From Guillardia theta CCMP2712 (Eukaryota; Protista; Cryptophyta): a DNA stretch of 64,000 bases. Position numbers and translations under genes: made by a program. This document shows positions 21,533 to 41,460 of this stretch, piece after piece. The stretch covers positions 74,969 to 138,968 of the forward strand of contig NW_005434665.1 in assembly GCF_000315625.1 (NCBI RefSeq), in the 5' to 3' direction. The notes below the pieces were generated by a model that searched no databases, was not told the DNA's origin, and saw only the letters and a program-made list of their open reading frames with translations. Numbering within the stretch: the stretch's first letter is position 1; the number at the start of each line of letters is the position of its first letter.

Positions 21533-22325
21533 ACAGACAGAGGGAGGGGGGGAGGGTCGAGCAAGCGAATGGCCGTGTACATTAGTAAATATCTACATCC
21601 CTGACAGCACCAAGCGGCTCAGACTCCTTGTGCGATCCTACAGCCAGAAGCATCTTGCTCCTCCAGCGAGCAGCAACTGAGAGTCCCTCGCCCCCGCCCC
21701 CGCGATGATCGCTGAACCGTCCTGCACCCACGCAACTCGTCAGCACTTCTCGCACGTGAAGCCTGCGACGAGTCACAGAAGTGAAGTGAAGAGGGATGGA
21801 TGGGCCGCGGTCAGGGACGGGAGGTACTGGATGCTTGCAGATGCGTCACCTCAGTATCAGCTTACGACCAGGCAACCCAAGTCATGCCGGCGTAAGACCC
21901 GGAGCGGCAGGGGCAGGGTGCAGTCAGACGACCGAAGGAGGAGATGGGTCGGAGCTGATATGTGCGCATTTGCACTAGACCGTACGGGATCGTGACGGCA
22001 TCCGGACTAGACGAGGAGCCTACGAAGATCTTGTTTGATCTACTCTGCTTGACCAGGAGGATTGAGAGGCAACTCAGTAATCAACTCTGAACTAAGTTGC
22101 ATCGGATTCCCCAAGTTCTCGATTGGTCTGTCAACCTCCCCAAGTTTCTTTTTTGTAGTCACCGGCTTAAACTTCAACGAATCGTGCTCCTCTACTTACT
22201 ACCTGACTTGCCTTACAGGACCCTCGTGACCGTGACCTCCTGTACCGTGACTCTCCGACTCCTCTTATACTCCCCACTTCTCTCCCTCTCCCCACGACCT
22301 CTACCAGCCTGCTCGCCGCCTCGCC

Positions 22326-22523
22326 ATGTCCCCGCTCCCTGCCCTGCCCTTGGGCACTCTCCCTCCTCCCCGCTTCCCCTCCGCCTCTGCCTCCTCCTCC
22401 AAGACCCTCCAGCTCGCCCGTCTCCGTGCCGCCATCGCCTACATCCAGCGCCTGCAACACCAGCATGGGGGCAGCATCGACGGGCTGCCGCTGCCCTGCG
22501 CGATCGCAACTGCGGAGGGATAG
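22326..22523 (+). CDS. Microprotein copy B (65 aa)
   Basis: Same features as copy A; KTLQLARLRAAIAYIQRLQHQHGGSIDGLPLPCAIATAEG*. Confidence 0.5.
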   Translation: MSPLPALPLGTLPPPRFPSASASSSKTLQLARLRAAIAYIQRLQHQHGGSIDGLPLPCAIATAEG

Positions 22524-23574
22524 ACAGACAGAGAGGAGTGAGGGGGAGAGGGTCGAGCAAGCGAATGGCCGTGTACATTAGTAAACAAGACATGAACGAC
22601 TGCACAATTGTGGGAGATGAAGGAAAGCGAATAAAAATCTTGCCGAAAGGGGAAAATCCTCTCTTGATTTCTCTCAGTGCCTGCCTGAGCTGAACAGGAG
22701 AAGGAAAGCTGTTTACAGGAGCGTGCTGTTGTATGCACATCACAGAGATCAAGGACGCTACGAGCAGAGTAAGGACCAGAGAAGCCAAAGAATCAGATGA
22801 TAGAAGTCTCTAGATTTACTTGAGCCAAACTGCACACAAACCAAATGCACCACACTCGCTGCACATGTGTCCGCATGCAAGGGGATCGAAGAAAGGAGAC
22901 CCGACGCTGATGGCGCATCTGTTCAAATAGAAAGTATCCGTACAAGTATCAGTAACGTCCGGATCCTGGTGGATATGATAACCCTTGCCGTTCAACGACT
23001 CGTGCGCAGCCCATGTGCTGCCATCGATGGTTATCTAAATCTTTCAAGTCTGATGTGTTAATACATCGCCCTGTCCTCTAAAGCTCAGGAAGGAGCAAGA
23101 TATCGTCCAAGAATGTTATCAAACTTCCGGTTGAGTTGTGGCAATCAGTGGTTGTAATGTCAGAGTGTTAGCGAGTACTGATATGTTTGCAGCAGCAGGA
23201 GAGATGACCAAGACATGGGTAATGTCATGGATCATGAGCTTTCAACCAGCAAACTCTGACCTGAGTCGCACCCCCGACCTCCAATCCCTCCGCTGTCCTG
23301 CTTACCTGAAGATTTGTATCTTACGTGACTATCACGTGACCACAACGTGACTTCAAATGTTCCCAGCTTCGAGTCTGTTCTGCGACTGCATCTACAGGTA
23401 TTCCCCACTTTTCCACCCTTTCCTAAAAGAATCGTGCTCCTCTACTTACTACCTGACTTGCCTTACAGGACCCTCGTGACCGTGACCTCCTGTACCGTGA
23501 CTCTCCGACTCCTCTTATACTCCCCACTTCTCTCCCTCTCCCCACGACCTCACCAGCCTGCTCGCCGCCTCGCC

Positions 23575-23772
23575 ATGTCCCCACTCCCTGCCCTGCCCTT
23601 GGGCACTCTCCCTCCTCCCCGCTTCCCCTCCGCCTCTGCCTCCTCCTCCAAGACCCTCCAGCTCGCCCGTCTCCGTGCCGCCATCGCCTACATCCAGCGC
23701 CTGCAACACCAGCATGGGGGCAGCATTGACGGGCTGCCGCTGCCCTGCGCGATCGCAACCGCGGAGGGATAG
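23575..23772 (+). CDS. Microprotein copy C (65 aa)
   Basis: Protein identical to copy B; 3' flank nearly identical to copy A. Confidence 0.5.
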   Translation: MSPLPALPLGTLPPPRFPSASASSSKTLQLARLRAAIAYIQRLQHQHGGSIDGLPLPCAIATAEG

Positions 23773-25582
23773 ACAGACAGAGGGAGGGGGGGAGGGTCGA
23801 GCAAGCGAATGGCCGTGTACATTAGTAAATATCTACATCCCTGACAGCACCAAGCGGCTCAGACTCCTTGTGCGATCCTACAGCCAGAAGCATCTTGCTC
23901 CTCCAGCGAGCAGCAACTGAGAGTCCCCCGCCCCCGCGATGATCGCTGAACCGTCCTGCACCCACGCACTTCGAGTCGTGACTGGCTCGTCAAGGCAAGT
24001 TGGGCTGCGATTCTCTGCTGCCAGTGTGATCAGCCTGAGGCTGCGAGGGATGGATGGGATGATCGGACATCTGAGTCTTCAAGCCTGGCAGTGCTACCGT
24101 AATCATAGTAGTAATGCCGGGGCCCGGCCATCTTCGGCTCCGTCGGACCGAGCGGCCCGGGTTGGAACTCACTGAGTTCACTGAGTCAACGGTCACAAGT
24201 CGCACGCCGGTACACTGGTGTCACCGTGGTGGCACCCCGGCGGTGACCCGGCGTGAGTCAGTCCGAGCCGGGCCTTCAATCAGGCTCTCTCTCTAGCCGC
24301 AAGTTGTTTAGGCCTCTCATCTCAGCCTCAATTTGTTTGATTGATCTTCGAATAGGAAAAACAAGCCTTCCCCAGCCAGATTGGTCGGTCGAATATCTGA
24401 CTCGAACTGTGGAAACACACTGGAGCTTATTCGATTCATATTTTCTTGCCATGATCTTTGAGTAGGATCAAATGGAACTACCAGGAGATCTGGCGGAAGT
24501 TTCATGTCATGGAGCTAGGCTGTGGCATGCATAACTGAAGCTACTTCTGGATCGGCGAACAAGGTACAACTGCACAACATCTTCAAATGCCTTGAAACGG
24601 ATGTTCCAATCTCGCGGCAGCAATCCGACTCTCTGGTCACAAGTTCTTTACGGTTCAAAATTTATCTTTTGGTCTTCAAATTTGAATGGTTATTGCCTGC
24701 TCAGCATAACTGTAAACTTGACGCAGACAGTCTTGTCGTATCTCGACTTGGAACTCTGCTGACATTCTCTTGTTTGATTGACTTTCTGACGTCCGATGTA
24801 ACGTACTATTTCAGAAACTCGGGGGGAGGATGGAACGTATGCCAGCCGTGCCAGTCAGATAGCGCCGAGTTAACAAAAACTCTCCTGTAAACCAAGATGA
24901 CTTACGTGGCGAGGGCCGGCCGATGTAGCTTGTCACGTGGGACGAAGAGGGGGCCCTTTCCTAGTAGCCGTTTTGCCAAGGTCCTCTCATGTCTGGATGC
25001 TTGGGTTTCACATCCTGGCATACAGTCTATCTCTCCCAGTGATGTGCTCCTCAATTCCTTACAACTGAGGTCTATGGCAACGGTGATATCTCAGTGCGTG
25101 ACTTTTGGACTAGTACAAGTCTAACAAACTTGTGCTCCGTCGGCCAGTGTCAGGGTCAAGCCTCCTCGACTCTCCTGATTGTCCTCGTACTCACTCAACC
25201 GTGCTTTTTCCTGAACTTCACTTTGAGTAAAGATTGGCACTGAGCCTGTCGGTGAGTCGAATCCGCCGAACTTCGGAATTTCCTCGGCCCCCGGATCTGG
25301 CAACCCGGTATCATCGGGTCCGCACGGTCTCGCCGGGCCGGGCCCGGGGATGATCCGGCCCGGCCCCAGTGTCAGGTGACCGTCGGACAAGCGGCCGCCC
25401 GCCGCGCTACTACCGAGGCTACCGTGTGACTAGCCTAACTTAAGTTAATCCGGGGCCGCCGGAGCCTGGGCTACGGACGGGCGGACGCAAAAAGAGGCAG
25501 TGATCCGATACCGCACGGTACGGTACTCGGAGGCGCGGCCGGGTCAGCCGGAGGGCGGAAGTCACTAAGCCTTGCCAGCAAT

Positions 25583-25630
25583 AAAAAGAGTTGTCCAACC
25601 TCGGAGCCAGACGGCCCCTCAGCCAGCCGG
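25583..25630 (-). ncRNA. Conserved 43-nt tRNA 3' extension plus T5 terminator (candidate small RNA)
   Basis: Shared by all three tRNA-iMet copies. Confidence 0.45.
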
Positions 25631-25702
25631 TAGCGAAGGTTGGTTTCGATCCAACGACCTCGAGGTTATGAGCCTCGCACGCTCCCACTGCGCCACTTCG
25701 CT
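25631..25702 (-). tRNA. tRNA-iMet: Initiator tRNA-Met (CAT)
   Basis: Cloverleaf AGCGAAG/CTTCGCT, A1-U72 pair, T-loop ATCGAAA (A54, A60), anticodon CAT. Confidence 0.96.
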
Positions 25703-27337
25703 GGAGGTTACACCCCATCCTACATTATATGACCCCCCTCTTCCCCTCCCCTCCTCCCTTCCCCCTGCTCCTCCCAGTACTCCTACCCAGCGTCGCTCCA
25801 CCCTTGTTACTTCCCTCCCATCCTGAGCTCCACCGATCATACACATCTCATCTACTTGCTCTTTGTCTGGGCATCCTTCAACCTCTCACCCATCGGCTCC
25901 CTTCACACCTGCTCAATCGCTTCTTCCTCGGGTATTGCTCCCTTCCTAATCTAAGCCTTCCGCGGAACCATGGCTTTGAACTCTCAGCCAAAGGATGATT
26001 GTGTATCATTACGCTGCTGTTCGGTTTTGAAAAAGATCTCATGATTTGATTTCATCGATGTCCTCAGCGCTCACGACTCATACCTATCCCACGATTCGAA
26101 TGCAGTCTTTTACCTCTTGTTTGATCACAATTGTGTACAGAAGTGAACAGGGAAAAGATCTGTACATGCTGTTTCCCTATCATTTATTCACTGATTATGT
26201 AGATGTTGACTACATCTTGGTGGTGCCATCCTTTAACCCCTCACATCCTTCTACTCGATTTTGATCTTCCTTCTCTGATATTCGGGGCCTATTTGAGATT
26301 TATCCTATCCAGTTTCTTGCAATTGCCATACGTTTACCCTGTTTCGCAGCACTTGTATATTATCCATTCTCAGATACGCAGTGTTACCTTCCTATGTCTT
26401 TCCTTGTTTCCCTACCCCTGGTCTCCCTGTTATCAGCTTACTCGTATGATTGATCCATTTCGAAAATGCGATCTTCTGCCTCTGCCTAAAGCCTTATTGC
26501 AGCTCTGATTTACCGCTCATTTCGTATGCTTGCCCCGTACCATCACTAACACTTTGTATTTTATTGAAATCGCGCGATTCGTTTCTCGTTTTCCTTCTGC
26601 TACCACTTTGTTCCATATCGTTTGATACACTACTTTTTCTTTCATGAAGTGTGTTTGCTTTTCGTTGACCACCTTTTTGCGCCATGCGAAAAACTACAAT
26701 CACCTTTCTTCGCATGAGCGTATGCACATAGCAAAGTTGGATCAAGACCTGTGGATATGTTGGAGAGGGAGAAAAAACAAGAAACAGCATGGAACAATAC
26801 AAATCATTTTGATTCAACATTTGACTTTCTACTGGAATTAATGAAAAAAAATCTAGAATTGTGAATGATTTCGTGAATGGATCTTTTCCCTGTTCACTTC
26901 TGTACACAATTGTGATCAAACAAGAGGTAAAAGACTGCATTCGAATCGTGGGATAGGTATGAGTCGTGAGCGCTGAGGACATCGATGAAATCAAATCATG
27001 AGATCTTTTTCAAAACCGAACAGCAGCGTAATGATACACAATCATCCTTTGGCTGAGAGTTCAAAGCCATGGTTCCGCGGAAGGCTTAGATTAGGAAGGG
27101 AGCAATACCCGAGGAAGAAGCGATTGAGCAGGTGTGAAGGGAGCCGATGGGTGAGAGGTTGAAGGATGCCCAGACAAAGAGCAAGTAGATGAGATGTGTA
27201 TGATCGGTGGAGCTCAGGATGGGAGGGAAGTAACAAGGGTGGAGCGACGCTGGGTAGGAGTACTGGGAGGAGCAGGGGGAAGGGAGGAGGGGAGGGGAAG
27301 AGGGGGGTCATATAATGTAGGATGGGGTGTAACCTCC

Positions 27338-27409
27338 AGCGAAGTGGCGCAGTGGGAGCGTGCGAGGCTCATAACCTCGAGGTCGTTGGATCGAAACCAA
27401 CCTTCGCTA
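27338..27409 (+). tRNA. tRNA-iMet: Initiator tRNA-Met (CAT)
   Basis: AGCGAAGTGGCGCAGTGGGAGCGTGCGAGGCTCATAACCTCGAGGTCGTTGGATCGAAACCAACCTTCGCTA; TATAAT at about -27. Confidence 0.96.
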
Positions 27410-27457
27410 CCGGCTGGCTGAGGGGCCGTCTGGCTCCGAGGTTGGACAACTCTTTTT
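27410..27457 (+). ncRNA. Conserved 43-nt tRNA 3' extension plus T5 terminator (candidate small RNA)
   Basis: CCGGCTGGCTGAGGGGCCGTCTGGCTCCGAGGTTGGACAACTC-TTTTT. Confidence 0.45.
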
Positions 27458-28304
27458 ATTGCTGGCAAGGCTTAGTGACTTCCGCCCTCCGGCTGACCCG
27501 GCCGCGCCTCCGAGTACCGTGCGCCGGGCCCTCCGTGCCACCGTGGCACGGACCCGGTGACCTGTGCAGTATCGGATCAGTCCCTCTTTTGCCCTCTTTT
27601 TGCGCATTGCACGATCCCGGGCGCACTTCGCCGGGCGGGCACGGAACTGCGGCGCGGCCCGATCGGATCGGACAGTGAGTGACTCGCGGGCCGACCCGGC
27701 CGCCCGGCGCCGGCCGTCGTCCTACCGTCTGAGTACTCCTCGGCCTCCGAGCGCACTAGATCCTGATATCAAATAGCGGTTAGTGACGTTATAGCCCGCA
27801 AAAAAGATCTGAAGCTATTTTGGGAGATCGGCGATTGCGAGAATCCTTCAAAAATTCATGGGAAATTTGAAATAATTTCAGTCATTGAATGTTGTCCAGG
27901 CTGACGAGCCTCTGAGGGGTAAGATGCTATCCTACTCGTTATCTCTTATTGATTCAATTAGAAATAATTGGATGTGGGGGGGGTATGATGCATCAGCTCT
28001 AATGCCTCCGGAAATAGAACAGGGAAAAAAAATCGAGGGGCGGCAAAAAGGCGGCGGCTGGAGACCAAACCTATAGCGAGGTACGATGCCATGCATGCAC
28101 GCTCAGATGCAAGATGTAGTCTGACCTGATGCTGTTTCCCCTTCATGCTGTGTTTCAAATGTTTTATGGGATGCACAGATGTCCTGAAAATGTGTTGTGT
28201 TGAAGTGTCTCGTCTTAAAAGATTCTTGTGTCAATGATGAGGCTGAAAATGTAAATGGCTTTGTTCCGCGAAACTATTATGTTCCTTTCTTACATGTTCT
28301 GCAG

Positions 28305-28685: not shown

Positions 28686-31118
28686 TTATGACCCTTTCAT
28701 TTCGAAATATTTGAGCACTTGTTGTCGATTTGCCCATCGTCCGAAGAAGGAGTTCTGCAGTGCCTCATATTTGGTGATGAACTCCTTGCTGCGAAGTCCT
28801 GGAACAGTCGCACGAAGTTTTATGTTCTTGATTAAGCAGGCGTCAACGAACAGGCATAAGCCTTCCGAATACCTGTACAGTCGTTAACTACACAAGTACC
28901 TCCAAGCGTCGGTACTTACTCTTGCCGAGAAAGCGATGGACTGTTTTCTTCCACGATATGCTTCTTGAACTCGAAGATGGACTTCGCATCGTAGAGCTCT
29001 GAGGTGTCAAAGAATGGTCTACCAAGAAGGAGCTCGAGCGTAAGCATGCCAACGCTCCAAACATCAGAAGCAAAACCGCACTCGAGCCCCAACAGTCTTT
29101 CAGGCGCCATGTACCCATACCTCCCAGCGAATCTTTGTGACTGCGAGGTCTGCGTCTTAGAACTAAACCAAAATCCACTCAAGCGAACTTCTCCCGATCG
29201 CAAGACCAAGAGGTTGCTTGGATGAATGTCATTGTGTATCCGCATTTTCCTCGAGTGAAGGTAGTCGAGAGCGTGCAGCACTTGCCGAAGAATGATGGAG
29301 ACATGCTGCTCTGGCACATTGCCTTTGACGTTCAGGATCTCGTGCAGGTATCGCCCGCCTCCATCGTCCAAGACAAGCATGACCTCCAGCCGGTTGAGGA
29401 AGGCATCCACCACTTGCACCCCCGTGTGCGGAACACTCGTAATCGAAGATTCCAGATCATGCAGACCGTCCAAAGAAGCAATCAACATGCGTCTTCCCTC
29501 TGACTCTGTGATCTTGAACTTGTGCACAGTGTATGTGCGGGCACCATCTATTGAGCGAGCTCTGTGACTTGTGAATCCTCTGGTTTCAAACAGCTCCTTC
29601 CTCTCATACTGGCAATGAACGTTCCAAGTGTCAATAAAAGAGAATGGACGAGCACTGAATGAATTACCTGCAGGTCTTGCAAAGTAATGTACAGTCCTCT
29701 CTTTACATTGAACTCTTTCAGTTGCACGAAACTTGACGGGCTGAGGATTCCATTCAGGGAAAATACGTAACCCGCTTTCTTCAGCAAGGGGTTTCCTTCC
29801 AAATACGAGAACTCAAAGTCAGAAGATTTGGGGAGCAGCTTCAGTTCCAGCTGAATTTCCTGTGAAGCGTTGCTGTTGATAAAATGGCTTGTCAACCTGG
29901 ATAGGACAATTTTTTCTCCCCCAGCTTGCAATACAGAAGACAAATCCACAAACGATGATCCCATCTCTGAAATCGTAAATGAATCACATAGAAGACAACG
30001 AGTTAATGAAAACTCACGCTGTGCATTTGCAAGCTCATCTCCTTGCTTCGGGTCAATCTTCTGGTAAAGTTTGATCGACATGAGAATTTTGAAGATGTCG
30101 CCTGTGAGATCGAACTCGTAGTTGTGCTCCGGAATCTAAGAAAGAGTCACGTTCCTTCCCTTGAACATTTCATGTTGTTGCAGATCACCGAAGACGATTT
30201 GAAATTTTGCATGTGAATAGACTTTGTCACATGGGACTGAGAAGCTCCATCCAAGGTCCCGTCGACAGAGAGAGAAACAATTACATTCCTGACCTCCTCA
30301 ACCTACCAGAAGAGAGTTTCACATCAGTGTGTCAAACATCTCCTTCCATTCTTCTTGTCACCTCATCTTCTCCGTCTCCTGCAAGGTCATTGAAACCGAG
30401 CTTCACACTGAGAATCTTTGCTATCAACGTGTAGTAGGAATGACTCGAAATGGAGACGTTCGTCTCATCCATTGAGTTCATGCTCTGCAAGGAAGACAAC
30501 ATCTTGTTGTGCTTCATCATTTTGACCCTCCTGCACATCTACTTCAGTTGAAGCTAATCCGCATTTAGCAGACAATTGAAGCAATGTAATACGTCGGAGC
30601 AATCAAATCTTTTCTGTCGTGTAGGAAATGGTTCACATTGCTAAAGTTCTTCCTTGTGCTTCCTGTGAGATCGAGTGTAAGGATCTTCTCAACCGTTGAG
30701 CAACTTCAGAGTACGATGTACCAGCGGTGAAAGGACGTGATCTCCTTTGATCCAAGTGCTGCTGCTCTGCATGAACTGATCTTGACGGCCTCGAAGTCTG
30801 AGGGCGATTCCACTTTCTATCTTCAGCATGCGCACTGGCTGCAGCGGGAGCATGGTCCATCCAATGATTGAGCGACCGTGACAAGTTGAGCGGGTTGGAG
30901 CGATGGTAAACTTCCCTGATCCGTGAAGCAGCTTCAGCACTGCTCTTGCTCCTATTGGAGATGCGAGGAGATATGAAGTTCACCAGCCCATGGTTCGCGC
31001 TCTTGGCACGGTTCGGACGTCTGATGCTCTCGTAGTCTCTTCCTCCCATCCAAGCAGGAGTCTCCTGCAGCCTCTGCTTCCTCTGCTCCAGCAACGACCG
31101 CATCTCCTCCATGGTCAT
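28686..31118 (-). CDS. MAP kinase kinase (STE7)-like probable pseudokinase with long N-terminal extension, multi-exon
   Basis: HNDIHPSNLL, VRLSGFW, FAGRYGYMAPERL, SDVWSVG; joining of 5' exons (30633-31118) is inferred. Confidence 0.75.
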
Positions 31119-31448
31119 CGAGCCAACGGAAGCCGGGTGTCCGTCGGGTCTCTCGCTTTATCCCCACCTGGTAGGCCCGGCGGCCCGCGGCAGCTCCGAC
31201 GGGCCCGGCGACTCAGTGAAGGCTCATCGGCCCGGGAGGCCGGGAGGCCGCAGTCACGGCAGGGCCAGGGCAGTGGGCCCCCGGAGGCGAGCCTGATGTC
31301 CGATGTTTTATCACCTTGTCAGACCCACCCATCACCTTCGAAGGAATCACCCCGTACTACCCCACTTTATCCTTGTATAATGGGGGGTTCAGGACTACCG
31401 TACCCCCAATTTTCCTGGGCCTCGTCTCAGCTACAATCCAACACGAAC

Positions 31449-33722
31449 ATGCTGGGCGAGGAGAACGGCTCTGCGCACCCTTCGTTCTTCTGTCCCATGA
31501 GCAGGCAGGTGATGACAGACCCGGTCACATGCTGCGATGGTCTCACCTACGACAGACCGCACATCGAAGCATGGCTCCAAGATCATGACACTAGCCCTCT
31601 CACTAACGCTCGCCTTGCCAGCAGAACACTGGTCCCCAACATCGCTCTGCGCAATGCGATCGAAGAGTGGCAGCAGCAGCAGCAGGGTCATTTGAGAATC
31701 GTTCCGAGGCACGATATCACATTAGGAGAGCAGCCGATCTCAGCGGGCTCCTTCAAGGCGGTCTACAGAGGACTTCTCAAGGTCTTGATTGAGGGAGACG
31801 GGGCCAGGAGGGTGCCAGTGGCCGTGCTCAAGATCAGGTCGACAGGCAATGGGGAAGAATTGCAAGGTCTGCATCGAGTTGGACGTCATCCTCGACTCGT
31901 CAAGGTCATGGGGCTATGCGAAGGGCCGGGCTTCATGTTACTTCCGATGGAGCTTGCCGAGCGCGGATCACTGAAAGACGCCTTGGGCCGGCTGGAGGGT
32001 CAGGTGTCGCTGCAGCACAAGCTGGTTATGATGCAGCAGATCGCACAGGGGATGGGGCATCTGGCAGAAAACGGTATAGTCCACAGGAAGCTGGGAGCGC
32101 ACAATGTGCTCCTGTTCGGCTTTGACCCGAACGATGTGCGGAAGACTTCAGTGAAGGTGACAGACTATTTCCTTCCCGAGGAGCATCAGAACCGCACTCA
32201 TGGCAGGGAGGCAGCACTAGCTCTGCCGATCCGCTACATGTCTCCTGAGGTGATCCAGGGAGGAAGCTACTCGGAGAAGAGCGACGTTTGGGCGTTCGGC
32301 GTGACGTGCTGGGAGGTCCTGACTTGTTGCAAGACCCCTTACTTGAGCATCTTGCAAGATGACAAGGTGTCTGAGTACGTGTGTGGAGGAGGGAGACTCA
32401 AGAGGGAGGACATTGTGGCTGGGTGCCCGCAAGAGAGCTGGGAACTGATCGAGAGCTGCTGGAGTGAGCTTCCAAACCATCGTCCGACGTTCTCAGCGAT
32501 TCTGATGGACCTCGGGAGAGCCTGTGAGGATCAGAGGACAGAGGGAGGAGTCGTGCAAGCTCTAACAAGGATGGCGGCAAGTGTCATCAGGGCGGTCGCA
32601 GGAACGTTGGAGGCTGTGGGTGGAAGGAAGCGAAAACGCGAGATTGAAGAACAAGAGGCGGAGAAGCGAGCAAAGGCAGAGGCAGCAGCAACGATCGATG
32701 CGGTCGTGACGAGAATGGTGCAAGCCGAAGACAAAGCAGAGGAGCAAGAGCTGGGGTGTGCAACGATAGGGAACATCCCGCAGAATGACCGTGACGGGAT
32801 TCGAAGGGCAAGAGAAGCAGGAGGAATCGAGACGGTGGTGACAGGGATGATGCGGCACGAGGAACATGCAGGGGTGCAGAAGCAAGGGAGCACGGCATTG
32901 TGGAATATGATGTCCATCGACGAATACGAACATAATGGAGATAAGGTCAGAGAGGTGGGAGGAGTGGAGACTGTTGTGAAGGGCATGGTGCGGCACGAGC
33001 AGCATGCGGGTGTACAGCAGGAAGGATGCAGATTCTTGTGGGATTTCGTAACGAGCGAAGTCAACAAGGTGGCGGTGAGAGAGGCGGGGGGGATCGAGGC
33101 AGTCGTGAGGGGGATGGTGAGGCACGAAGAGCATGCTGGGGTTCAGAAGCAGGCGATCAGATTCTTCCGACGGATTGCCCTGCATGTTCGCGAGAATGAT
33201 GTGAGAATGAGACAGGCAGGAGCTATCGAGGCGGTTGTGCAATCGATGGTGCGACATGCCGAGGACGCGGAGGTGCAGGAGGAAGGGTTCGGAACCTTGA
33301 TGAACGTCATGGCCAACGATGAAGAGAACCACCAGAGGCTAAGAGCGGCCGGGGGGATCGAGGCCATAGTGAATGGCCTGCAGAGGCATCAGCAAGTGCC
33401 ATCCTTGGCTAGGGCTGCAATGCTTGCCATCTGCACTATGATGGAGCGACCGGAGCAACTAGAGTACAACGAGGAGAGGTTCAGAAACGCCGGAGGGATC
33501 GAGCTGATCGGGAGTGTGATGCTGAGGTACGAGGGCAACTATCCGATGTGGTGCTGGGGATGCCGTATCCTGCATGCATGTTTGACGCAGAGGCCCGAGA
33601 ACTTGCGTCTCATCGAGGGACTCGTTCATTTGATTCAGCAACTTGCGGCAGCAAATCAATCCGGCTATGGCCCGGTACCTGCTCTGCTCCAAATCATCAA
33701 CCATGGAATTCACCAGCATTAG
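31449..33722 (+). CDS. U-box + tyrosine-kinase-like (pseudo)kinase + armadillo-repeat protein, intronless
   Basis: U-box FFCPMSRQVMTDPV..TYDRPHIEAW..TSPLTN..LVPNIALRNAIEEW; kinase PIRYMSPE, SDVWAFGV; about 6 ARM repeats AGGIE.VV.GM.RH. Confidence 0.92.
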   Translation: MLGEENGSAHPSFFCPMSRQVMTDPVTCCDGLTYDRPHIEAWLQDHDTSPLTNARLASRTLVPNIALRNAIEEWQQQQQGHLRIVPRHDITLGEQPISAGSFKAVYRGLLKVLIEGDGARRVPVAVLKIRSTGNGEELQGLHRVGRHPRLVKVMGLCEGPGFMLLPMELAERGSLKDALGRLEGQVSLQHKLVMMQQIAQGMGHLAENGIVHRKLGAHNVLLFGFDPNDVRKTSVKVTDYFLPEEHQNRTHGREAALALPIRYMSPEVIQGGSYSEKSDVWAFGVTCWEVLTCCKTPYLSILQDDKVSEYVCGGGRLKREDIVAGCPQESWELIESCWSELPNHRPTFSAILMDLGRACEDQRTEGGVVQALTRMAASVIRAVAGTLEAVGGRKRKREIEEQEAEKRAKAEAAATIDAVVTRMVQAEDKAEEQELGCATIGNIPQNDRDGIRRAREAGGIETVVTGMMRHEEHAGVQKQGSTALWNMMSIDEYEHNGDKVREVGGVETVVKGMVRHEQHAGVQQEGCRFLWDFVTSEVNKVAVREAGGIEAVVRGMVRHEEHAGVQKQAIRFFRRIALHVRENDVRMRQAGAIEAVVQSMVRHAEDAEVQEEGFGTLMNVMANDEENHQRLRAAGGIEAIVNGLQRHQQVPSLARAAMLAICTMMERPEQLEYNEERFRNAGGIELIGSVMLRYEGNYPMWCWGCRILHACLTQRPENLRLIEGLVHLIQQLAAANQSGYGPVPALLQIINHGIHQH

Positions 33723-41215: not shown

Positions 41216-41340
41216 TTCTTGCTGGTACCGTTATCATTAGCAACGGAATAGAATTTACCCACATCCACCCTACGGCCCATATCTTTCAGGCCAGCGCAGG
41301 GCCAGCGTCCCTCCGATAAAACGGAGGGATGCCTCCCGTC

Positions 41341-41388
41341 AAAAAGAGTTGTCCAACCTCGGAGCCAGACGGCCCCTTAGCCAGCCGG
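41341..41388 (-). ncRNA. Conserved 43-nt tRNA 3' extension plus T5 terminator, third copy (1 substitution)
   Basis: 42/43 identical to the other copies; sequence beyond the T-run is unrelated. Confidence 0.45.
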
Positions 41389-41460
41389 TAGCGAAGGTTG
41401 GTTTCGATCCAACGACCTCGAGGTTATGAGCCTCGCACGCTCCCACTGCGCCACTTCGCT
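41389..41460 (-). tRNA. tRNA-iMet: Initiator tRNA-Met (CAT)
   Basis: Identical to the copies at 25631 and 27338. Confidence 0.96.

Follow-up and report, generated by a model that had tools for sequence, protein, structure and literature searches.

The window, the whole 64-kb stretch of DNA analyzed here, belongs to a eukaryotic nuclear genome and carries kinase, U-box, and EF-hand genes. It contains three tRNA-Met(CAT) genes on which ARAGORN and Rfam concur. Each scored 63.7 bits against RF00005, for which the gathering score is 29, and the cloverleaf is the minimum free energy (MFE) fold. It had been noted in the initial annotation that all three initiator (tRNA-iMet) genes are followed by the same 43 nt and then by TTTTT. 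This proved correct: the 43-mer occurs exactly three times in the 64 kb, each time abutting a tRNA gene and with 0, 0, and 1 mismatch, and a T5 run follows at each. Dinucleotide shuffles of the window contained no match to the 43-mer, and the chance expectation is 0. The single difference is an A that replaces G at trailer position 11 of copy C (window position 41378). Because the trailer begins with CC, the ARAGORN call is 2 bases longer than the gene given here. No T4 run lies inside the tRNA or trailer of copy B. The features on which the analysis is built are as follows:

27338 to 27409, plus strand: tRNA-iMet copy B, 72 nt, with discriminator A at 27409 (ARAGORN; Rfam RF00005, 63.7 bits)
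27410 to 27452, plus strand: 43-nt 3' trailer of copy B, beginning with CC (exact 43-mer; identical to that of copy A, one G>A relative to copy C)
27414 to 27445, plus strand: predicted trailer hairpin of copy B (MFE, −18.0 kcal/mol)
27453 to 27457, plus strand: T5 run, presumed Pol III terminator, closing the conserved block (sequence and copy comparison)
25631 to 25702, minus strand: tRNA-iMet copy A (ARAGORN; Rfam)
25583 to 25630, minus strand: trailer of copy A (25588 to 25630) with its T5 run (25583 to 25587) (copy comparison; 43-mer search)
41389 to 41460, minus strand: tRNA-iMet copy C, an independent copy (ARAGORN; Rfam)
41341 to 41388, minus strand: trailer of copy C (41346 to 41388) with its T5 run (41341 to 41345) (copy comparison; 43-mer search)
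25520 to 26160, no strand assigned: left arm of a perfect 641-nt inverted repeat, carrying copy A (100% complementary; 719-nt spacer)
26880 to 27520, no strand assigned: right arm of the same inverted repeat, carrying copy B (100% complementary)

The tRNA carries the marks of an initiator, namely, an A1:U72 pair (AGCGAAG...CTTCGCT-A) and an A54/A60-type T loop, ATCGAAA (AUCGAAA); together these are defining features of eukaryotic initiators. G29:C41 is near-universal in eukaryotic initiator tRNA. Here the anticodon stem, CGAGG/CCTCG (27364 to 27380), has A29:U41 at that place, so that two remain of the three successive G:C pairs (29:41, 30:40, and 31:39). The metagenome relatives described below have CAGGG/CCCTG with all three G:C pairs, and pairing at 29:41 has thus been kept by a double change. 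Since the pair is kept in this way and the variant is present in all three window copies, we still read this tRNA as a working initiator.

Among the neighboring genes, an uninterrupted 910-amino-acid ORF on the plus strand (30990 to 33722) encodes a U-box, a protein kinase domain, and ARM/ZER1-like repeats. Its best named relatives come from the cryptophyte Hanusia phi, with 53% identity over the kinase part, which agrees with the cryptophyte origin supposed in the initial annotation, and no relative above 53% identity was found among 5.8 billion proteins. The best matches are paralogues that are 38 to 53% identical, which makes this gene unusable for locating orthologous iMet loci. The window also contains a direct repeat of about 410 nt (22176 to 22585 and 23426 to 23829) with a 1.25-kb period, the repeats being 96 to 99% identical.

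To judge conservation of the trailer, the independence of the three copies matters. Copies A and B face outward from the two arms of the inverted repeat, each arm of which reaches from 458 nt upstream of the tRNA to 63 nt past the T5 run. Because they lie within sequence that is 100% identical, A and B constitute one observation, and the window holds two independent copies. The identity of the arms also points to very recent duplication or ongoing conversion. Copy C lies 14 kb away. Its identity to the other two starts at −1 (a C), covers the tRNA, the trailer, and the T5 run, and goes no further, and the flanks of copy C cannot be aligned with those of A and B on either side. The shared block has one change in 120 nt and reaches 48 nt 3' of the tRNA versus 1 nt 5' of it. 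The original statement that identity with the third copy is bounded by the tRNA 5' end and the T run therefore stands, with the start refined to −1. So does the proposal that the conserved block coincides with the Pol III transcription unit, which agrees both with these boundaries and with the presence of the unit behind an unrelated flank in a second species. On the evidence of these comparisons, the trailer appears to be under constraint.

The second species, which carries a different species label and is called organism C here, is represented by a DNA sequencing run (X6). Seven of 16 words sampled from the 201-nt stretch from 27300 to 27500 were found in that run; these seven lie in the 120-nt unit, and the run gave no match to the unique flanks. 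When the region from 27138 to 27737 was searched at 85% likeness, a 283-nt contig of organism C matched positions 27337 to 27448 with two letters different. Sequence ahead of 27337 on this contig is unrelated to the window, and the contig stops at 27448. The only other organism C match of at least 85% on 27138 to 27737 was to a G-rich low-complexity patch. Hence, a relative retains the tRNA and no fewer than 39 of the 43 trailer nucleotides in another context. A freshwater metagenome (X7) also matched the unit. It represents the same organism as the window, flanks included, and is therefore not an independent source. A contig from a seawater metatranscriptome has tRNA positions 6 to 72 and the following CC in common with the window and diverges after that; its 5' end is different, so it may be chimeric, and we give it little weight. 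Viral contigs scanned with a tRNA anchor and the trailer core yielded 0 matches. From an RNA run of the species itself (cDNA; about 6% of it read), four reads fell on the 600-nt region and none on the trailer, a result that is uninformative for a short Pol III transcript.

More distant, uncultured relatives came from a scan of JGI metagenome contigs for the final 22 nt of the tRNA gene (T arm plus acceptor strand), which returned 23 loci, about 12 of them distinct. Similarity between these loci and the window is limited to the tRNA (90 to 95%), and ORFs on the contigs gave no Pfam or Atlas signal. The relatives' iMet trailers extend 16 to 38 nt to the first T4 run and differ in sequence; 6 of 10 start with CC. 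For comparison, we took the other tRNA genes of these contigs, 22 distinct ones (Ala, Trp, Val, Gly, Thr, Phe, Glu, and Ser). Thirteen of these have a nearby T run, with trailers of 3 to 15 nt, which do not overlap the iMet lengths; the other nine have no T4 within 60 nt, and four of the nine are Phe genes upstream of Ala. A CC start is found at 1 of the 22 non-iMet genes versus 6 of 10 iMet genes (Fisher P = 0.0014). Long, CC-initial trailers are thus specific to iMet among these relatives.

Although their sequences differ, the iMet trailers of the relatives have a common layout, with a short palindrome adjoining the T run (for example, GAGGAC-AGU-GUCUUC, GGUGC-AGU-GCAC(U), GAUAC-AUU-GUAUC, and GGAUA-A-UAUCU). 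On a MAFFT alignment, a 6-bp helix had 84% of its cells paired versus 72.6% in column shuffles (0 of 500 reached 84%) and 40 to 65% when the partner strand was slid, a comparison in which the helix is favored because it was derived from the tested sequences themselves, with three sequences shifted by one column. Four of the six pairs show changes on both sides. Several of the individual hairpins are thermodynamically marginal (0 to −1.6 kcal/mol), and RNAalifold predicted no consensus structure on the alignment of the relatives' trailers. Five of the loci are syntenic, with iMet convergent with a Phe-Ala pair, so that at least part of the variation is orthologous divergence with pairing kept. 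MAFFT failed to align the window trailer with these trailers. The locus richest in G+C, L011, has a weak local match to it (GAGGG..GCCGTCT; P of about 0.03), beyond which homology between the window trailer and those of the relatives is not demonstrable.

The same contigs yielded several observations on tRNA gene arrangement. At L011, tRNA-Ala(CGC) follows iMet by 36 nt on the same strand with no T run between them. Same-strand Phe-to-Ala(AGC) pairs about 52 to 64 nt apart (L003, L006, L008, and L021) and a same-strand Glu-to-Ala(CGC) pair 23 nt apart (L010/L020) likewise lack an intervening T run, and these closely spaced tRNA pairs of the relatives are probably dicistronic. The relatives' Phe trailers all open with a small hairpin (GGAU..AUCC or GGAA..UUCC) that varies with pairing kept. 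In one iMet copy, found at L005, L014, and L019, the anticodon stem has lost 2 nt (GCAG-CTCATAA) and the variable region carries G-to-T changes; this copy, at the syntenic Phe-Ala-iMet locus, is probably a pseudogene.

Folding of the G. theta trailer predicts a single hairpin at −18.0 kcal/mol, a structure that makes up 36% of the ensemble. Its outer stem, CUGGCU/GGUUGG, includes four G.U pairs and is separated by a 2×2 GA/GA internal loop from the inner stem, GGGGCC/GGCUCC (27422 to 27437), which is closed by the loop GUCU. Pair probabilities are about 0.9 for the outer stem and about 1.0 for the inner stem, and when the 120-nt unit is folded whole, the tRNA cloverleaf and the trailer hairpin form side by side. 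Seven unpaired nucleotides precede the U run; since the hairpin ends this far short of the T run, it is no close copy of a hairpin-plus-U terminator. The stability of the trailer is ordinary for its G+C-rich composition: z against dinucleotide shuffles is −1.1, with 26 of 200 shuffled sequences reaching the same stability. The initial annotation had described the extension as structured and had offered two folds for it. Its description is apt insofar as the trailer does fold at the energy given; the fold is not statistically remarkable. The second of its folds, GGGGCC[GUCU]GGCUCC, matches the inner stem of the MFE structure, while the first is suboptimal, at −11.7 kcal/mol. The G>A change at trailer position 11 lies in the loop of that first fold, as had been stated, and in the 2×2 internal loop of the MFE fold.

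Two other structural candidates were considered and set aside. A second small hairpin abutting the T5 run, GAG(G)UU[GGAC]AACUC, contributes about +0.1 kcal/mol and has a pair probability of 0.0. The trailer as a decayed second tRNA was dropped because local alignment of the trailer to the tRNA was no better than that of shuffles (P = 0.44). Separately, just past the T5 run of copy C (41296 to 41340, minus strand), there is a G+C-rich hairpin, CCCUCCG[UUUUAU]CGGAGGG, inside a longer stem. It folds at −25.8 kcal/mol (z = −4.2; 0 of 200 shuffles as stable), has a T4 in its loop, and has no counterpart downstream of copies A and B.

The reading that we prefer, at a probability of about 0.5, is that the extension is an iMet-specific, structured pre-tRNA trailer that likely acts in cis and that selection together with gene conversion has kept the copies alike. 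What the sequences show is the anatomy, the boundaries of the conserved block, its conservation in organism C, and the iMet-specific long trailers of the relatives; that the trailer is transcribed, is cut off, and has a role is inferred. The nuclear Pol III unit would comprise the 72-nt tRNA, the CC-initial 43-nt trailer with its 32-nt hairpin, and the T5 terminator. The trailer would be transcribed within the pre-tRNA, on which it would act in cis. With a structured 3' end next to oligo(U), the precursor would be protected from 3' exonucleases and nuclear surveillance, and the hairpin would favor clean endonucleolytic removal of an RNase Z type, end formation by Pol III at the five-T terminator, or both. 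The piece cut off, 43 to 48 nt long, would then count as a by-product resembling 3'U-tRFs (tRF-1). Purifying selection on the transcribed unit plus gene conversion or duplication would account for the near-identity of the copies. CCA is a known antideterminant of eukaryotic RNase Z, and by analogy the CC at +1/+2 of the trailer is notable, given that it might bear on the same enzyme.

The likeness of the copies could also have a neutral history, with a functionless trailer and copies that are either young duplicates or homogenized by conversion dragging the trailer along with the tRNA. The perfect identity of A and B over 641 nt indicates that recent duplication or conversion has been at work at this very place, the window offers two independent copies, and the fold is no better than those of shuffles and lacks an Rfam match, all of which fit such a history. 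However, leakage from conversion should ignore the limits of a transcription unit, and the shared block ends exactly at −1 and at the terminator, 48 nt on one side of the tRNA and 1 nt on the other. Nor would a neutral history predict a trailer kept behind an unrelated flank in organism C or long CC-initial trailers specific to iMet in the relatives, and we regard it as a real possibility that is nonetheless rather unlikely. Boundaries that match the presumed primary transcript would suit copying through an RNA intermediate, and the initial annotation had raised a tRNA-derived, SINE-like retroposon as an option. This option fails on several counts. Target-site duplications are lacking (the flanks agree at 7 of 16 positions for copy C and at none for A or B), as is an A-rich, simple-repeat, or LINE-like tail, the unit closing instead with its own T5 terminator. 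Its head is a full-scoring, canonical tRNA, and there are three copies in 64 kb with no fragments elsewhere in the window. In organism C, the contig with the unit has a depth of 61.2 versus 40.3 to 53.9 for three longer contigs on the G-rich patch, so that the unit is low copy there, with the reservation that contig depth is a poor measure of copy number. We find a retroposon or RNA-mediated origin scarcely credible. In a separate search of the window, complements of the tRNA 3' end or trailer resembling a primer-binding site did not exceed chance.

Two further explanations give the trailer a function different from the one we prefer. In the first, the gene is dicistronic, and RNase Z would release from it a stable small RNA of about 43 to 48 nt, the trailer, that acts in trans. 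The position between the discriminator and the U run is that of 3'U-tRFs, the predicted hairpin is stable (−18 kcal/mol), and the trailer is kept between dispersed copies and in organism C. Set against this, comparison of the trailer with Rfam, which had been proposed along with the small RNA, was run at the gathering score and at E values up to 10 and gave chance-level matches only; no family was recovered on 27400 to 27470 up to an E value of 10, with the best hit at 11.9 bits versus a gathering score of 50, and sR10 and sR14 reached 7.7 and 6.6 bits versus gathering scores of 45 and 38. The trailer is not a C/D snoRNA: the 43 nt contain no C box (RUGAUGA), and the sole CUGA (27418 to 27421) becomes CUAA in copy C through the G>A change. 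For a tRNA-linked pre-miRNA of the MHV68 type, about 20 bp or more would be needed, while the stem here is 6 plus 6 bp around a 2×2 loop and, at 12 bp including four G.U pairs, falls short of what Dicer requires. No read fell on the trailer in the RNA run, an uninformative library. The trailers of the relatives differ in sequence, which leaves no conserved guide or target sequence. A released, trans-acting RNA is, in our estimate, distinctly unlikely.

In the second, the conserved element would be read as DNA, as part of the promoter or terminator: for example, an external B-box-like TFIIIC site or a context that strengthens a weak T5. The B-box consensus is GGTTCGANNCC. The sequence GGTTGGACAAC at 27440 to 27450, about 31 to 41 nt past the tRNA, fits it at 7 of 11 positions, and the elements of the relatives are DNA palindromes adjoining T runs. 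Yet GGTTGGACAAC has a G at the equivalent of the critical C56, and the motif occurs in none of the relatives' trailers; with the key C replaced and the relatives lacking the motif, an external B box is unlikely. Because the palindromes vary in sequence while their symmetry is kept, they are a better fit to RNA pairing than to one DNA-binding protein. A DNA-level signal of any of these kinds is accordingly very unlikely in our judgment.

Pre-tRNA trailers are usually short, unconstrained, and ignored. Translation initiation is limited by how much initiator tRNA the cell contains, and the precursor of this tRNA serves as a model substrate of nuclear RNA surveillance. An initiator-specific trailer conserved between dispersed genes and across species would suggest a dedicated control step in the biogenesis of initiator tRNA, and the system would suit asking how trailer structure directs a precursor to RNase Z, to exonucleases, or to decay. 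If the conservation reflects concerted evolution only, this is an ordinary tRNA gene family whose terminator lies slightly distant. A bolder proposal, which we hold to be speculative and unlikely, is that cryptophyte-like algae share an iMet trailer module (CC, stem-loop, and oligo(U)) that gates maturation versus decay or yields a functional hairpin RNA. Such a module would be a cis-regulatory switch on translation-initiation capacity or, in the alternative, the source of a functional hairpin RNA produced in step with the initiator tRNA. A full-text literature search turned up no account of trailers like these in cryptophytes, nor of trailer hairpins confined to iMet in any group. Long or structured trailers and trailer-derived fragments are already known as kinds.

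Several known systems resemble the G. theta unit in part. The external B box of Dictyostelium is likewise a conserved element a few tens of nucleotides beyond the tRNA 3' end, and it is found at most tRNA genes, iMet and others. The iMet motif differs: it agrees with the consensus at 7 of 11 positions, the key C is replaced, and the relatives do not have it. Like tRNA-derived SINEs, the unit joins a tRNA to extra 3' sequence in several copies; unlike them, it has neither target-site duplications nor a tail, its tRNA is intact, and its copies in the 64 kb are few. The plant tRNAGly-snoR43 and MHV68 tRNA-miRNA genes share with the preferred model a tRNA promoter, a longer Pol III transcript, and a split by RNase Z that separates off the downstream RNA. 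The iMet trailer lacks their C/D boxes, an Rfam snoRNA match, and a hairpin of pre-miRNA size, and it is only 43 nt long. The 3'U-tRFs (tRF-1) cover the same part of the transcript, between the RNase Z site and the Pol III U run. Known 3'U-tRFs are 13 to 26 nt and largely unstructured (PMC10275265); the G. theta piece would be 43 to 48 nt with a predicted 12-bp hairpin.

The pre-tRNA trailers of yeast bear on the preferred reading, a cis-acting trailer, most directly in their place and effect. A review of established yeast work describes how longer or structured 3' trailers shift processing between Trz1 (RNase Z) and Rex1 (PMC10275265). Of the four yeast pre-tRNAiMet species, two carry longer trailers, and TRAMP/exosome surveillance, in competition with 3'-end formation, has pre-tRNAiMet as its main client (PMC10275265). 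In both systems, the trailer lies between the discriminator and the oligo(U) of a Pol III transcript, iMet is among the tRNAs affected, and trailer length and structure set, or in G. theta would set, which nuclease acts (Trz1/RNase Z or Rex1) and how far the precursor is exposed to surveillance. The G. theta trailer differs from those of yeast in that it is much longer, at 43 nt, begins with CC, is near-identical between dispersed copies, is kept in another species, and forms part of an iMet-specific pattern across an algal group, features that have no described equivalent in yeast.
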